Assembly (NCBI GenBank): GCA_037447605.1
Contig: CM074805.1
Coordinates: forward strand, 124,001 to 188,000
Reading direction: 5' to 3'
Source of the DNA: Zygnema circumcarinatum SAG 698-1b
Taxonomy: Eukaryota; Plantae; Zygnematophyceae
DNA length: 64,000 nt
The stretch's first letter is position 1, and each line of letters opens with the position of its first letter. Under the pieces are notes generated by a model. It made no database searches, was not told the origin of the DNA, and was given only the letters and a program-made list of their open reading frames with translations. This document shows positions 32,223 to 41,600 of this stretch, piece by piece. A program made the position numbers and the translations under genes.

Positions 32223-34075
32223 CCCCCCCCTCTACTCTCCCCCAATGTTCCAAATGTGCAAACTTGTCGAATGCCGAACTAGCAGACTATAAGAAATGAC
32301 AGGGCAGGGAAGGGTGACTCTGAACCCTTCAGATCAGACAAACCACGCTACGAACAGGCTTGAATCTCAGCATGGCCGCTGCAGTGCCCTTCCACGGAAG
32401 ACTTGCAAAATCTGAAAAGCTGGAACAATGCGGAAACTTGGAACACGGCTATCTTCTTGTCAAATAGATGATGAAATAAAAGCACGCAGGCTGCAATGGG
32501 AGGGAGGGAAGGAAAAGAGAGAGAGTGGAAGGGGAGGCAGGAGAAGGACGGGGACGGAGTTGGAGCTTAAGGACCCGCCATGGCTGCTTGCGTTTCTGCT
32601 TCTGCTGGCGTCCGTACGCTTTTACGAACCATACGTCACCGTACTGTACCTTTGAACCTTCCTACGGGAACGGGACGGCGGCGCATGGAACGGGCAGTCG
32701 GGCCTCGGCCTGCATTATTGCCGCCCGAGGGCGGGAGCGGCGGAGGGAGGACCAGGACTGGAATTTGTTTGGAGATAAATTTTCGATCTGTCCGTAAAGG
32801 CAAGTACTGTAGTGGTGCCGTACTGGGGGACGGTGTCTGATCTCAGCCGTCCGATGGTCCGCGGCTCGGACTTCAGGCCGTCGGATGCTGCGGCATAGCA
32901 TGTGAAGAATGGTAGCCGACCATTGATGTGTTTTTTCAAGGGGAGGATGTGGCATTGACCTCACGATGGCGATGCCATCAAATGTGGATTTTCCCGTCCC
33001 ATGTGCATTACGGACGACAAGACATGGCGGCCATAATTTCTGGGAGGACCGCAACAGTGACAACAGAAATCAACGACAACAGAATGGAGGGGGAGGGGAG
33101 GGGGAGGGGGAGAGCCGCGTGGAGAGATAATCAAACCGCATGAAGAAGAAGTCCAAGTCGAAAGCTCTTCCATTACATCCGCGCTGTGGCCGGTAAAAAT
33201 TCGAAAGACGGAGAGTCAGCATTAAGGATTAGACCTACACTTCTCAAGCCTGCTGCCTATCATATACTCTGCTCAATTACAGCATCTATACCCGCTATGT
33301 ACACAGCAAAAAAAAATTAATGAGCCTACGCCAGCACATATGTTAGTCCTGCTTAAGGCGCCCCCACTGCGTACTACGTGAAGCCTATAAGTGCAAAACT
33401 GCGGGAGCCTACATCGGCGAGGCTGCAAACCACGAGGACTCGAGCGTTGTTTCCGGCAGCGTCTGTTTGTCTGAGAACAGTCGGATATAACAAAGGGGGC
33501 GGCCAAGCGCTGGACTCCCTGCTGTAATGATCCCTTCCTCTTCCGACTCTGTCATGGAGAAAGCTGTGAGGAAAGCGAAAGGAGTCCGCACAGCTTCTTC
33601 CATCTCAGGTCACACTTCCCCTTCAGGCTGTCTCTCGTGTCCCTCACTCTCTCCCCCTCGGCTTGCAGCCTTCAGTCTCCTTCCACAGATATGCGTTATG
33701 TACGACCCACCGCTCCCAACCTCCACTTATACTTCATTAACTTTATTTTCATTACTATTCCCCTCTCGCTCCCCTCCCTCTGCGTATTTTTTGTTCCCCT
33801 CCACTGATCCTCTGTAATAAGCCTCCTGACCGCCAACAGCTTCTCTCTGGACATACACTGGAAGTGCTCAAACACAGTCTTCAACCACCCATGAAGGCTC
33901 CCTCCATTTCCCCCTCCGTCCCACTCTTTCTCTACTTCCCCACCTCCCCCCTTCACTCCCTCCCCCCCGCCCCTCTTGCCTGTCCCTTCAAGGGGGGGTC
34001 TGGGGCATTCTCAGTGCCTGCTGCCTAACCCAACTTCAGACCAAACTGTTGATTTGTAAGCGCATGCGATTTCCT

Positions 34076-37000
34076 TCAGCCTTCCTCTCCTGCGTGAGGC
34101 ATCAACCTCTAAAGCTTGTTACGAGTGGGATTTGATGCAACAACATCAAAAGATTCACACATAACCTCAGTGGTAAGAAGTGGTCAAAAAACTAAAAAAA
34201 AGGGCGGTGAGGCGCAGGACGGCCCCCTTACCTCGCTTCCAGAGCATGCGGGGCCGGTGTGCATCATTCTTTGCAAAGTAAAGGCCGCATGCATTGCAGA
34301 GAGGAGCCCCGCCCTGCCGGTCTTTCCTCCAAAACGGAGTGGCGCGAGTGTTGCAGTTGCTGCAAACTTTGGGTGTTTCGGATGCCAAGGGCCGCCTCAG
34401 CCTCCTCCCGCCCTCCACATCTCCTCTCTCGTCTTCTCTCTCCCTCTTCCTCCAGTTCCCCCCTCCTGACCTTCCTTCACTCTCACCCTGTGCCCCAAAG
34501 GTTCCTCCAAGTATGGGAGTCCCGTCCTCATCGAGGCCTTGCCTTTCCCCTAAGCCTCCTCCAGCGTTTGCCCGTTCCCCCATAGGCATAGCTCCACCCT
34601 CCACAGCTGACCCACTTCCCAGCACTAGATCCGCAGGCTGCAAGAAACCCCCAAAAGAATTTTGGACCCCCCCCATGTCGGGTCTACCCTGCGCGGGATG
34701 ACTTTGCTTGTTTGAGTCCTCATGAGGGATCCCCCCCATGCCATGCATAGGAAAGAGGGCGGCATGAGGAGGCGCCCATGGCTGAGTTTGAGAACACAGC
34801 CACCAAAACCAGAGGAGCTGCTGTCGCTGCATGTAAGAGGCAGCCACCCTATTGCCTGCCCTGTCCATTAAAAGACCTCCTTCCGCAGCATCCGCAGCAT
34901 CCGCAGCAACAGAAGAAGTTTGTTCTCTGCCTGGGGTTGGAGGGGGCACTGCTCCTCCCAGCGATAGAAGAGGGAGCTCTCGAGGAGGGCCTCCTTGGAA
35001 ACCTGGAGGGCTGTTAGGACGGGGGTATTTGGCCATAAATTCCTGCAGAGTTTTGGGGCTCCTAACCGGAGAAGGGCCCGACAAAGGTGTTGCTGGGGGA
35101 GAGGCCCCTGCGAATTCTTTGGGGTCCCAAGCAATAGAAAGTCCGGTACTTTTGTGCTTTCCTGTGTTGCATGCTGTGTCCAGTGAGAGCCTGCATTGGG
35201 CCTCCTCGTCTCCTGTCGGGAGGGGCCACACTGCGCCAAAGCTTTTCCCCGCTGTCCCCTTATGGAAGGGCTCACCAAGGGCGGCCGGAATAAGAGAGCG
35301 CGGTTGAGGGCGGATCACACTACTCCCTTCTCCTTCGAACACTAAAGCGCTGTGATCACCCCCAGCTTCAAGCACTACAAGTCGGCCCTTCGGGAGGCCC
35401 TCTATGATTGTAGGCTCTAAAACAGTCCGTCTGGAAAAGACCAAAGGAAATACCCATTACATAGTCAGACTTCCGGTACCGCCGTTACTTCACATGCTTA
35501 CTTCAGCATGCATGCAGGCTGATCGGTCACTCTGCTGATGTTTAATAGCAAAAAAGGTGATGAGAGGGAGGAGGAGTGTTCACCCAGCAGAGCAACCGAG
35601 CTGCCAATGCTCATTGTCTCCCCAGCCATAGACCGCCCCAGAGCTGACATAGGCGATGCTGTGCTTCTTTCCGGCCGCCACCTGCAGCACGTGGTCGGAG
35701 CGGAGCGCCTGCACCTGCAGGGGACGGAGAGTGTCCTCGCGGCTCCCGTGCCCAGTTTGGCCCCAGTCTCCTCGGCCCCACTGCGGAACACGGGCAGCAG
35801 CTGGTCAGCAAGAGGAGAGAGGGCGCAGTGGGAGGAAGATGGATACAGGAGCGGGAGGGCAACTGCTGGCTGGAAGTGGGAAAGGGAGAGGGAGAGGGAG
35901 GGGAACCAGGCAGAGCAACTAGAGTGGGAGGCTACACATTCAAACTGAAAATTGCTCAAATTTTGCCCGGGATACATTCATTCCACATACACACAAGAGA
36001 CCTCTTTTGGACCAATAATCATTTTAAGTTTGTAGACATATCATCTATCTGCTAATTGAGTTGGACTCCGAGCAAACTGCGAGGAAGCCTTTAGGTTGTT
36101 GAAATTAATAAACACATAAAGACGTCTCAGCGAAAGCTCCAACACATTAACGCCCCACATCTCCAACGTCAAGGTGCAACTTGACTCGTAGCGCAAAACA
36201 AGCCCCAAGTTTTTGCATGTACCCAGTATGTCATTCATCGTAGGATAACTCTGCCCATCCCTGAATCTTGTTGTTCAAGAACTCTCCTGAAACTGCCGTT
36301 AAGACATACATGCACATTCTTGAACAGCTTTCTGAAACATTCAAGTGTAGAGACAGGAGTTACTCACTGTGAACAGAGACCCATCTGTTGTGATCGCCAA
36401 AGTATGGTCCCCTCCACATGCAAGGCGGGTTACACGCACACCGCCCATGTGCACATATTGCGGCAACGACTTGTTGGCTGTTTCATTCAGTCCCAACGCC
36501 CCATAGGTTCCCCGCCCCCAGCTGTACACCGCGCCCTCTGATGTGAGGGCTGTGCTGTGCTGCTCCCCACATGCCACCTGCAGTCAAGCAATTCCTTTTT
36601 CAATGAAATGAATCCCCACTCAGTAAGAACAGCAATAAACAAAAACATACAATATTGTCAACACATTACCGTTAAATTTTGTAACATAGAGACACACACA
36701 TCTTCATTAAGCATCACTAAAGGCCCACCTGCAGAACATTCGTTGAACTGAACTCCAAAATGAGCCTCGCGGTCGGGGACCGCAGTTGGGACCCTAAGCC
36801 CAAAGCACCATAGCTGTTGCTGCCAAAGGAAAAGACCTGCCCGCTCTCTGCAGGAAAAAGATTGGCCCGCCTTCTCACCATCGTCAGTCCAAACAAACTC
36901 TACAGAGCTTGCCCACTCTCAAACCCCCTGCCTGCCTAACCCCTTCCTCTCATAGAATGCAAGCTCTCCTCCTCCTAACCTCTTAGCCATGGCTGCCCCT

Positions 37001-38641
37001 CACCAGTGACTGCCAGCGTGTGGGTGGCTCCACAAGCAACCTGCATGAAGCGATGCTTTAGTGGAAGCGCCCCAACGACAGCGCGTGGCCGGCTCACCTC
37101 CTCCTCCCCTTCAACAGCGCCCCATACAACCAGAGAGCCCGTTCCTGCCCATTCGCACACACATAGCATCAGCAAATCGGTAAAAACAATCTATGTGGGT
37201 CTTCAGCGACTGATATAATCCAGAGCATACTGGTTCAGGCCCTCCATACTCGGACTTCATACTAACAGCACCATGAGAAAAAACTCGAGGCATTGCTCAG
37301 AAAGGTAAAAGCAAAAGGGAGTATGGAAAGACGTAATTAGAAGTAGTTGAGTCTCCTAGTTTCACGACGGCACTTGCATAGTGCTGAGAGTTGAGGAGGG
37401 GCGAACCTGTGACCGCTGCACTGTGGTCTCGGCCGCAGGCAACATGCCTTATGCTGCACATATCCAGAGCTGCCACCTGCACCGGTGCAGGGCTGGACAT
37501 AAACCCTGAAACACCAAGCTGGCCTGCACGATTGCTTCCTGAAGTGAAGACCTGGCCATTGGCTGCCAAATTGCCCCAATCCACCAGGTAATCAGCTCAC
37601 AGGAAAACATTCAAATGAGAGCTGAATTTGCAGTCGATGAATTGAAGCTCAATTTCCCGGCACTAAACTGACGGTTCCGCTTAATGCCAGCGGTTCTGGA
37701 TGGAGAATTAAGATAGCAGCAAGCAAGCAACTTGGAACCGTATTAAAAGAAAGGTAGATACTGCTTCATTTAGAGGCTGTCCGTTGGCCTACCCGTGAGG
37801 AAGGCAGTGTGCAGCTCTCCACAAGCAATATGAACGAGCTGGTCTGCTGAGAAAGGAGGCAGAACCACGGGACCGCAGCCTGGCACAACGTGGCCAATGC
37901 CCAGCTGGCCCAAGTCGCCCTTCCCCCATACATGCACTGCATGCCAGAAGCCCAAAACATGGTACCCCGCATCTCCCTTGCCTTTCGTGAGCATGCACCG
38001 TCTTTTGCTTGCAAAAGACTTATACCTTCCTGCATAAGCGGAAAGAAAGTAACGCAAATTCGAGTTAACAAAGAAGACTGCGAGGTGGAGGTAAAGAGGA
38101 GTTCCAACAGGGGTTCGTTGACGTCACCTGAGGGGCGGGTGGCATTCACAATCCCAGCTGGAACAAAGTCCACGTGTTGCGTTTTGGGAGGCCATGCTGC
38201 AGATATTACAAAGTGGACAAATGAATACAAACGTTATCACTAGCAGAGGAAGCTGCCGGGGTTAGGCAGTAAGAATCCGACCCATTCAGCAACGACTCGT
38301 AGAACTTCTTACGCTCAGAAGTACACTCAAACATGGATTGAAGAAGGCTTAAGGAGCAGACACAAGGAGACCTGTTCAGCTACTCAAATGCAACCTTTGT
38401 CTAGAGGAAGAACCAAAAGGATGCCTAGCGGACGAAAAGAGATACAAATCTTTAAGAAACTTAAGCCATGCCACTTCCCACAGTCCATGAGCGAAGCTAA
38501 TCCGCCCTTCAATCTCCTCGCATGGAGCTTTTCCTAGAAAATAGCTATATCCTTCCCCTGTTCAGTGGTTGCCCCCCCCAACCAGACCTTCAAGAAAGAA
38601 GATTATTGAGACCAAAGTTAGCGCAGAACCTTACCCAACAT
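34076..38641 (-). CDS. RCC1-repeat (7 blades) protein with C-terminal GATA zinc finger; first exon and stop tentative
   Basis: Seven RCC1 repeats across consecutive phase-compatible exons from 37936 down to 35430. The last joins an open exon 34232-35430 that ends in CSNC-x18-CNAC (34287-34364). Confidence 0.88.
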
Positions 38642-41600
38642 TTCCTGGCACTGCAAAGGACCGGTGGGCCAACTCTTTTTGTTTGCTTGGTCGCCTTCTT
38701 GCAACTCCTCCACCTTTCCTTCAAAGAAAGGTCAAACCCCTCCGCGATTCAACTCCGACCTCCACTTCCTCTACCTGCCCTTTCCTAAAACCCAACCCCC
38801 CTAAATCCCTCCTTCCCTTCTCCCTACCTTTCCTTTCAAAAATTCTGAGCCTCAAACAGGCTTTACCGAAGCACCAGGATTCCCGAATGTCGGAAGCTCT
38901 TCCAATAGCCCATACAAAGTGGAACATGCGTCCACCTCATGTCCATCTCATCCTCCCGCCTCAACCGTCTGCCCCGTACGTCCCTTCCGTCTCATTCTTG
39001 CCCTCGCCTCTCCCACCTACCTCCTCCTACCACCGTGTGTCGAAAAGCACGCCTCTCTCGCCCCCTCTGCTTCCTCACCAAACTGACTGTCATAAGCCCA
39101 AACCTATCACCGCTTTCCACCGCCCAGCACTCCTCTCCACTTCTGAACCTTCACACAACTACCTCCCTCCCTCCTTATCTCTTCTCTTGCGGCCCTCTTC
39201 CTCCCCCTTCCCTTCCCACTCCCCCTCCCCCTTCCCCTTCCCCCCTTTCCCTCCCCTCTCCTTCCTCCCCCTCTCCCTGTACCTGTCCTCCCTGCTCCTG
39301 CGCCAGCAGTGCAGCGAACCCTGGAAAGGCCCGCGATGGCGGCTGAGGAAGCCCGACCCTTCAAGCCAAACCCTAGCTAATTAGGGTTGAGCGGCGGGGT
39401 TGAGCCATGGCAGCGGCGCGCACCTCCTCCCGTCGGCCTGGGCGCGAGAGAGACAGAAAGGGAGGGAGGGAGAGAGGGAGAGGGAGAGGACCGCCCCGGG
39501 CCCGGAGACCCCCGCACGTGCGAGGCCACGCGTCCGCGCGGGAGAGGCGTGTCCGTGGCGCCCTTTCAGGCAGGGTGGGTGACGTGGCGCCCGCCCGGGC
39601 GGGCGAGACCCGGTCAATAGCCGTCAACGCTACGCTGGGCGGGCGGGCGGGCCCGGAAAATACGAAAAACAAAACGGGGAAAAATCTGGCGCTGCTCGCT
39701 GGCGGGCCGCGCTGGAAAATCTTCAATCCGGCAATTGCGAAAGTCAACGCGGTACGTATTTCAAAATGCGCGGCACGGGCAGGCGAGGGAAACTTTGGCG
39801 GACCATGTGTGGGAATTGTTTTGGATGGGCCGACACCTTGGACAGCCTGACGGGTCCCACGTGGCAATCATCCGCCCTTCCCCGCCCGCCGCAAAAACTG
39901 CAGATTTATCGCACGTGCGAAAACAGCTCCAGCTACAGTGCAAGTAAGCCGAGGCCGGTGCGGTGTGCGTGTAAGGATGGTGTCCAGCCGTCCGTGAAAC
40001 GTGCGAATTATTGAGCTAGGCGCTGGGCACCGTCGTGTCGTCGCCAAGATTACAGGGCTATAGGCGCCCGCGGATCAATCGGGATGTACGGACAAAAAAT
40101 GTACGGAAGCGGTAGTGGAGAGGCTGTCAGGAAACTGTCCAAACTTTGGGTCTTGACTTTTGGGTCCGTTCCGAGTTCCCTTGGTGCCCAAGTTGCGAAC
40201 CACCGCGATTCAGGTTTTTTTCAAAAAACCGAAAGTCGGATGTGCGGCTTCATCAGTTTGAGGAGACAGGCGGCGAGGCCGGAAGGGCGACGGCAGACCT
40301 TGAACAGACCTTCGCTAATACGAGCATGCCACGTGGCTGCCAGCTGGCCGGGCCAAATGCCATTGGCTCCATTGGTGGCCACACGACAGCAAGCCGGAAC
40401 GCTTGCTCTAGTGGCCGAGGTAGACATTTTTTAAATACAGTTTTTACCCCATTTTCTGGATGCGCCTATAGAGCCACGAGGCCAGTGTGTGACGTCAGAC
40501 GTGGCTTCAGGTTGCCCACACGAAACCGGGCCCTTCCAGCCGTACCCGTCCTATCTGTCACGCGCTGGAAAGGGGAAATCGAATGCCGTGCACAAATTTC
40601 CGTTCCCTATCCGGGAAAATTTGCCAAAATTCTGGACGAAATCCTGCAAGTGGCCCCGCGCCAAATTGGTCGCAATAAATAATGATGATGCCGTCGCGTA
40701 AGAAAATTCGCGGGCCGATTTTCACCGTACGGCTGCCCGCCCGCCCGCCCGCCCGCCCCTCCCTCCGCGATTTTCGAGCCCCACCAGCAGCCCGGGCGGG
40801 CGGGCTGCCCCAAAAGCGCGGCACATCGTCCGTACGGCGCCCCGTTAGGGCCGCACGCGCGAGATCGCCGACCCGCCCGCCCGTAACCAGCAACCGAACG
40901 TACGGCCGCGGGGCCGGGCCTGCTCCCCTGCCACGTAGGCGCCGTGGCGCTGGACGCGTTCTCCGGGCAGGGCCGGGCCGGCTCCCGGCTCCATGTACGG
41001 CCTGCGGCCGGGGGGGCGCAGATCCAGAAGATCTCCGATGCGCAGATGGGGCATCGCGATTCGCGCCGCTTGTGGCCGCCACGCGGCAGTTGACCAACGG
41101 TCGGATGGATCTTGAAAAGGCAGATGTGCCGCGGCGATGCGCCGAATCTTTGCGAGGGCCACGCGGCGGCTGCTCCTGACGACAGCAGCCTGCGCGAATG
41201 GCCCGCCGCAACGTGGCGGCGCGGGGCCGCTCGACGCGAAGGTTCCAGAGGCTGCCACGCCAGCCACGTGCGTCGTCGCCGGGCGGCCCTTGTCGCGGTG
41301 CGGGCGGGCGGGCGGGCGGGCGGGCGGGCGGGCGGGCGGGCGGACGGACGGGGGGCGGCGCATGCGGGGAAGGCGGACCAGGGCTTATCCGCTTATCCGT
41401 TGGTTCGGCGGACGAACGGAGGCGGTACCGCGCCAGGCAGGCAGGCAGGCGGGCGGGCCAGGCTCCGTGCTGGAACCGTTCCGTCCTGTTGCACGCGTTT
41501 CCGTGTTTCCTGAAAAGGAGTCGGGTCACACGCGGGCGCGCGATGAAGCAGCGTTCCGTGTTGAACACGGCATTGGCCGCCAATTCGGATGCGCGGACGT

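Follow-up and report, generated by a model that had tools for sequence, protein, structure and literature searches.

An expressed gene of Zygnema circumcarinatum that probably joins a UVR8/HERC-like RCC1 propeller to a complete green-algal GATA factor

Several plant RCC1-like proteins, among them UVR8, TCF1, and SAB1, affect transcription although they lack a DNA-binding domain, and the manner in which such propellers contact chromatin and transcription factors is still under study. RCC1 sits on nucleosomes. In UVR8, GWRHT motifs in three blades supply the tryptophan triad W233, W285, and W337, and a VP motif in the C-terminus (the C27 region) binds COP1. UVR8 is reported to bind transcription factors directly (PMC13322755), and TCF1 is reported to bind histones H3/H4 and to associate with the chromatin of a target gene (PMC4579128). 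Here, we describe a gene, referred to as RCC1-GATA, in a 64,000-nucleotide (nt) stretch of the genome of Zygnema circumcarinatum SAG 698-1b (assembly GCA_037447605.1, contig CM074805.1, positions 124,001 to 188,000; the window, in which all coordinates below are given). The gene and all of its features lie on the minus strand. Unlike UVR8, which has no DNA-binding domain of its own, the RCC1-GATA protein carries one in the same chain as its propeller. We estimate a probability of roughly 85% that RCC1-GATA is a real, expressed, and lineage-restricted fusion of a UVR8/HERC-like propeller with a complete algal GATA factor, i.e. a DNA-bound protein equipped with its own docking module.

The coding sequence runs from 38641, the A of the start codon ATG, to 34076, the last base of the stop codon TGA, and these are the end points that had been proposed in an initial annotation made from the sequence alone. 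It consists of ten coding exons (38641-38635, 38196-38128, 37936-37793, 37562-37407, 37144-37004, 36847-36729, 36577-36368, 35780-35584, 35430-34232, and 34089-34076), which together give 2256 spliced nt encoding 751 residues plus TGA, with no internal stops. The RNA evidence consists of contigs assembled from the public runs X1, X2, X3, and X5, which derive from three studies, and aligned to positions 33600-39000. All predicted introns were found as contig joints in these runs, at the exact positions and with GT..AG on the minus strand, and among them are the joints at 35430 and 34232, for which the initial annotation had proposed an RNA check. The word depth at the splice joints was 39-386x, and a single contig of 2634 nt from run X1 (contig 2) contains all coding exons in order. 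Contigs covering introns were 5-20x shallower than the spliced ones, as expected for pre-mRNA, and cleanly spliced mRNA was detected in seven runs.

The connection between the two halves of the protein lies in one exon of 1199 nt (35430-34232; 399 codons), which is entered at 35430 through a GG|A junction in phase 2, as had been annotated, and which encodes blade 7, the linker, and the GATA finger in a single frame. The used frame has no stops versus 14 and 9 in the other two frames, and 20,000 shuffles of the exon never left it free of stops. Because blade 7, the linker, and the GATA finger share this stop-free exon, we conclude that RCC1-GATA is one gene with one spliced mRNA and one open reading frame (ORF). 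The single gene with a seven-repeat RCC1-like domain and a type IVb GATA finger proposed in the initial annotation is thus borne out by the RNA joints, by Pfam, and by the spliced ORF. That annotation had also let the protein end in the large exon; the exon does carry the finger, and it is followed by a terminal intron of 142 nt (GT..AG) and by four further codons (GEEG) and the stop at 34089-34076, an end that the initially proposed gene limits in fact imply. This last coding piece (34076-34089; joint 34089/34232 in X1, X2, and X5) completes G748 and adds E, E, and G before the TGA at 34078-34076. Two explanations of the locus as an artifact were rejected: two separate genes are ruled out by the presence of blade 7 and the finger in one exon, and a genome mis-assembly is ruled out by the independently assembled RNA contigs from three studies, which are colinear with the genome with zero mismatches.

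Residues 26-383 comprise seven RCC1 repeats, in which the G-x-x-H-[ST] motifs GELHT, GRDHS, GATHT, GEQHS, GGDHT, GKKHS, and GGDHS are spaced 47-52 residues apart. A WG/GQLG-type hairpin precedes every motif, the third repeat being short and degenerate, and PF00415 (RCC1) matches each of the small repeat exons with E-values from 2e-4 to 4e-18. Specifically, RNA joints delimit repeat 1 (WGKGDLGQLG ... GELHT; residues 26-73; 37793-37936; E 5e-10), repeat 2 (GRDHS; residues 74-125; 37407-37562; E 8.5e-13), the shorter repeat 3, which is without the GQLG hairpin (GATHT; residues 126-172; 37004-37144; E 2e-4), the first part of repeat 4 (residues 173-212; 36729-36847; E 2.7e-7), the end of repeat 4 together with repeat 5 (GEQHS and GGDHT; residues 213-282; 36368-36577; E 4e-18), and repeat 6 together with the start of repeat 7 (GKKHS; residues 283-347; 35584-35780; E 2e-16). 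The end of repeat 7 (RLVVLEAGGDHSALVFEG; residues 348-383; 35325-35430) follows the joint 35430/35584, which is present in four runs; it was matched over repeat 7 in a phmmer control, and it finishes ~35 codons into the 1199-nt exon.

Among solved structures, UVR8, which like RCC1-GATA has seven repeats, scored highest with 184-206 bits, followed by HERC1/2 with 115-157, RPGR with 85-114, and RCC1 with 62-110. UVR8 was the best solved-structure match of the exon at 36368-36577, and the exon at 35584-35780 is ~45% identical to single UVR8 blades. There is, however, no tryptophan in any of the seven G-x-x-H motifs, and GWRHT, and with it the UVR8 triad, is absent. By inspection, the 751 residues also contain no UVR8 VP-acidic motif, the V-P pairs FVPAG, VVPGC, and AVPPP being without following acidic residues. 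As judged from these comparisons, the propeller is best classified as a UVR8/HERC-like RCC1-like domain and not as the UVR8 photoreceptor. A UVR8 orthologue or UVR8-type UV-B sensor is excluded because the tryptophan triad is missing, in line with what had initially been annotated.

The same scores bear on the idea that RCC1-GATA is a Ran guanine-nucleotide exchange factor, which the GATA finger would tether to DNA sites and which would make Ran-GTP locally. RCC1 proper is characterised by a beta-wedge and catalytic residues on its Ran-binding face and by a basic N-terminal tail. The propeller belongs to the same repeat family as RCC1 (PF00415), and RCC1 itself works on chromatin; nevertheless, the match to RCC1/SRM1 (yeast) is, at 62-110 bits, far below those to UVR8 and HERC1/2, and the N-terminus is without a basic tail of the RCC1 type. 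We regard a tethered exchange factor as very improbable and take the propeller to be, more probably, the docking module of a DNA-bound factor.

The C-terminal part of the protein contains a GATA zinc finger, C704-x2-C707-x18-C726-x2-C729, which reads CSNC-x18-CNAC and continues into the tail YFAKNDAHRPRMLWKR (residues 702-747; 34233-34370). PF00320 (GATA) matched the large exon with 49 bits (cut-off 26.8; E 4.4e-13), and the finger keeps 26 of the 26 invariant family columns in an alignment of its relatives (alignment A1, whose members include P0010, P0017, P0024, P0036, P0038, P0079, P0158, P0159, and P0162). The 18-residue spacing of the type IVb finger is the same as in the land-plant GATA classes A-D, which have HAN, LLM, CCT/TIFY, and ASXH partners. 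The TPFWRK signature of the finger differs from the usual land-plant GATA form. Whereas classes B, C, and D have HAN/LLM, CCT+TIFY, or ASXH partners, the Pfam scan of the large exon gave GATA as its sole match, with CCT and TIFY absent above threshold, so that the initial statement that the usual plant GATA partners are missing is upheld for CCT/TIFY on this exon. HAN and LLM are short motifs for which there is no Pfam model; they were not seen by eye in the protein.

Upstream of the finger are two further conserved elements. A glutamine-rich/aromatic motif, YMQRQQLLWFWWLCSQ (residues ~545-566; 34776-34841), is predicted to form a helix, and within it YMQRQQLLWFWWLC at residue 551 stands 160 residues ahead of TPFWRK. 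A basic stretch, RKRER-x10-RRLRR (residues 675-694; 34392-34451), is conserved in the Chlorokybus protein P0010 and looks like a bipartite nuclear localisation signal, a role that it may well have. When the last 216 residues were modeled with AlphaFold2 on the basis of alignment A1, a helix was predicted over the aromatic motif (residues 10-31 of the modeled piece) with a predicted local distance difference test (pLDDT) score of 68-81, along with the finger at pLDDT >90 and disorder elsewhere.

The best single-finger match was P0010 (Chrsp33S05068), a protein of 321 residues from the streptophyte alga Chlorokybus atmophyticus, with 66% identity over 73 residues spanning the basic stretch, the finger, and the tail. 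The similarity extends beyond this segment: the two proteins have an upstream MQxQQ-W-WW-C motif in common (MQAQQMWWWWYC in Chlorokybus versus MQRQQLLWFWWLC here), and both end at the same distance, 34 residues, from the start of TPFWRK. P0010 and the last ~215 residues of RCC1-GATA are thus colinear over the glutamine-rich/aromatic motif, a disordered spacer, the bipartite basic stretch, the finger, and the KNDAxRPxxLWKR tail. Among 62 fetched relatives with TPFWR[KR], 28 carry the upstream glutamine-rich/aromatic motif. Family members have in common a TPFWRK…NACGLY…KNDAxRPxxLW finger, soon after which the protein ends in many relatives, a basic stretch, and, 100-160 residues upstream of the finger, a glutamine-rich run followed by an aromatic cluster. 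Its named members are all green algae, i.e. Chlorokybus, Caulerpa, Ostreobium, Hariotina, and Chlamydomonas eustigma, and one example of the conserved glutamine-rich/aromatic helix in the A1 subfamily is QQQAAMCWWWQMWM. We found no description of a TPFWRK GATA subfamily with its own helix motif in the literature searched, and it appears so far undescribed.

Based on this correspondence in sequence, the last ~215 residues of RCC1-GATA constitute an entire GATA factor, belonging to a green-algal family of stand-alone proteins. This aspect was missed in the initial annotation, which saw a finger on a linker where the C-terminal third is a whole family member with its conserved helix. Because these residues match a whole stand-alone GATA protein, the simplest history would be the fusion of a gene for an RCC1-type propeller to a whole GATA factor gene. 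In the stand-alone algal proteins, the N-terminus is short and unstructured and RCC1 repeats are absent, whereas here ~535 residues including the propeller precede the motif. Between propeller and motif lies a linker rich in glycine, proline, and alanine (residues 384-544; 34842-35324), which has no family match, GATA being the only domain that Pfam finds in the exon. The linker had been annotated as Pro/Gly/Gln-rich; its composition agrees for glycine and proline, and alanine takes the place of glutamine.

Members of the same GATA subfamily were also seen next to other domains. P0162 (ENA, 495 residues) has two Tudor domains of the PTM/DIR17 type after the finger, and P0137 from Hariotina reticulata (727 residues) combines a tubulin-tyrosine-ligase domain (PF03133, E 1e-31) with a finger of this subfamily, a combination that is either genuine or due to a gene model that merges two genes. 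Because the family is joined elsewhere to tubulin-tyrosine-ligase and Tudor domains, the sequences suggest that it shuffles readily.

We also searched for the combination of RCC1 and GATA in other proteins. In a phmmer search with the 399-residue exon against 1.84 billion representatives, all 3296 matches were made through the finger and the best 150 of these 3296 were GATA-only; because no match was below 1e-30, the protein and close orthologues are absent from that library. The large-exon ORF (429 residues) gave only weak GATA matches when an index of 5.8 billion proteins was searched for entries of up to 750 residues, one residue short of RCC1-GATA itself. With an E-value limit of 10, the propeller had no match among the 156 GATA relatives fetched first, RCC1 repeats were found in 0 of 173 fetched GATA relatives, and PF00415 was present in 0 of 22 family members for which precomputed Pfam domains were available and in none of the 12 matches obtained when P0137 was used as query for proteins of 400-1272 residues with a near-identical finger. 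Because some database proteins are mere ORFs called on genomic contigs, we examined six-frame translations of three genomic loci of relatives (L001-L003); there was no propeller match within 1-7 kb upstream of the GATA ORF, while in the window, used as a control, all seven repeat ORFs were matched. A scan of JGI metagenome contigs gave no relative.

An ESM Atlas feature search returned only low scores (0.77-0.78), for RCC1+FYVE proteins of plants and RCC1+PHD proteins of haptophytes. These proteins, the former known as PRAF/RLD, resemble RCC1-GATA in combining a propeller and a small zinc-binding module in one chain; however, FYVE is a lipid-binding and PHD a histone-tail-binding module, neither of them being a finger that recognises specific DNA sequences, and at these feature scores the two are analogies only. 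Nothing relevant on RCC1 combined with GATA was found in the literature searched, and a survey that covers 165 species, Klebsormidium and 15 chlorophytes among them, with a total of 5,335 plant GATA factors makes no mention of RCC1 (PMC11608367). The initial annotation had called the combination unfamiliar, and it was found neither in the other proteins searched nor in that literature. With searches that were driven by the finger or the exon and included no PF00415+PF00320 or whole-propeller query, the RCC1+GATA fusion is so far known, as judged from sequence comparison, in one alga only. Both kinds of domain are known; their combination is a new architecture.

How could the two modules work together? 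We suggest that the bipartite basic stretch and the finger would direct the protein into the nucleus and onto DNA sites of the GATA type, that the conserved helix would serve the GATA family's own function, probably by partner or activation contacts, and that the covalently attached propeller would be a platform onto which another protein, histones, or nucleosomes could dock. Precedents for such docking are RCC1 on nucleosomes, TCF1 on H3/H4, and UVR8 on transcription factors. Of these, Arabidopsis TCF1 is likewise an RCC1-like propeller working at chromatin; lacking a DNA-binding domain, it depends on recruitment, whereas the RCC1-GATA protein would itself bind DNA and bring along a module for binding chromatin or a partner.

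The distance between propeller and finger matters for this arrangement. It amounts to ~320 residues, which are mostly disordered and rich in glycine, proline, and alanine, and because of this long disordered linker tethering is favored over allosteric gating. The initial annotation had proposed a one-component regulator that links an input at the propeller directly to WGATAR binding. In a sensor-regulator of this kind, the propeller would perceive a signal, such as light, a small molecule, or the Ran-GTP state, and directly switch DNA binding by the finger. Such a sensor would be in keeping with blades that are closest to the photoreceptor UVR8 among solved structures, with the direct binding by which UVR8 itself regulates transcription factors, as reported (PMC13322755), and with the presence of propeller and finger in one chain. 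On the other hand, the chromophore of UVR8 is absent, tryptophan occurring in 0 of the 7 G-x-x-H-[ST] motifs, the linker suits tethering better than gating, and no result points to a ligand site, a signal, or a coupling of the domains. The sensor-regulator is conceivable and gained no support from our analysis, and we consider it improbable. A broader variant, in which the UVR8-like propeller acts in cis and a bound partner, a histone mark, or a signal decides where or whether the finger engages DNA, strikes us as unlikely.

Several observations weigh against our interpretation of RCC1-GATA as a fusion in which a DNA-bound GATA factor has its own docking module. The codon statistic of the linker is 0.114 in the used frame versus 0.089 and -0.047 in the other two, a separation that is barely visible. 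That the repeats close into a seven-bladed beta-propeller is suggested by the repeat count only. RNA support comes from assembled contigs and not from single long reads, and therefore additional GATA-only or propeller-only isoforms, arising from an internal start or early polyadenylation, are possible. Finally, no orthologue of the same architecture was found; therefore, selection on the fusion is unmeasurable, and the fusion may be young and of little consequence. The lack of an orthologue and the weak codon bias of the linker are also what could be expected of a young, neutral, or decaying fusion, or of read-through of once-adjacent genes, in which the halves do not cooperate and the functional products, if any, are shorter isoforms; the occurrence of the GATA family with tubulin-tyrosine-ligase in Hariotina, which may be a gene-model merge, and with Tudor domains in the ENA protein points in the same direction. 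Against this, the seven repeats, the four cysteines, and the 26 invariant family positions are all intact, the 399-codon exon is stop-free, and the mRNA is cleanly spliced in seven runs, while read-through of two genes is contradicted by the exon that blade 7 and the finger share. We therefore consider a fusion of non-cooperating halves quite unlikely and favor the tethered docking module.

If this interpretation is correct, a propeller that is covalently joined to a DNA-binding factor would support, by gene-fusion logic, the notion that this class of propellers works at promoters, and the RCC1-GATA protein would provide a simple system for finding the binding partner of the propeller. Were the less likely variant true and the propeller to act in cis on the GATA module, the protein could serve as a 'Rosetta stone', indicating that RCC1-like domains such as those of UVR8 and TCF1 are basically adaptors of transcription factors and chromatin. 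Independently of the propeller, the analysis newly defines a green-algal GATA subfamily with a conserved helix motif and adds what appears to be another case of the free shuffling of domains seen among those streptophyte algae that stand close to the origin of land plants. The importance of the fusion would be modest if it is confined to one species.

Turning to the remaining features of the transcript, the ATG is preceded by an in-frame stop, with no earlier ATG within the second exon. This exon (38635-38718; joint 38196/38635 in four runs) contains 5' untranslated region (5'UTR), the ATG at 38641-38639, and the codons for M, L, and the first base of A3. Upstream of it, an X1 contig extends 241 letters past 38720 and matches 39285-39314 onward, which defines a 5'UTR intron of 564 nt (38719-39282) and a first 5'UTR exon (39283-39525, the upstream limit being approximate) with its donor GT at 39282-39281. 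A short upstream ORF, MAQPRRSTLIS, lies inside the first 5'UTR exon. In X2, X3, and X5, other contigs are unspliced from 38635 to beyond 39000, and therefore the transcript may have alternative 5' ends. At the other end, the 3'UTR extends downstream of 34076. In X2 and X5, the contig of the last exon runs >2 kb past the stop with unchanged depth, whereas in X1 it ends ~58 nt past the stop, positions 33600-33756 being covered by another contig of greater depth; the pattern at 33600-34088 reflects either a long 3'UTR or overlap with the transcript of a convergent neighbour.

The coding exon for residues 3-25 (38128-38196; joints 37936/38128 and 38196/38635 in four runs) encodes an N-terminal segment, VDFVPAGIVNATRPS, in front of blade 1. 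In run X3 only, a joint 38028/38127 indicates an alternative acceptor at 38029, the use of which adds an optional in-frame extension of 93 nt or 31 residues, GRYKSFASKRRCMLTKGKGDAGYHVLGFWHA (37937-38029); its depth was 66 compared with 157 for the main joint. The extra residues directly precede blade 1, and because DAGYHVLGF within them resembles the G-x-x-H strand of an RCC1 repeat, the two isoforms, with and without the 31 residues, may differ in how the propeller is closed. Lastly, the first three propeller introns, in the segment 37793-37004, are in phase 1 and lie six residues past the G-x-x-H-S/T motif (HTAFLT|, HSAAVT|, and HTLAVT|), whereas the later ones are placed differently within the repeats; the shared early placement may be a trace of exon-wise duplication of the repeats.

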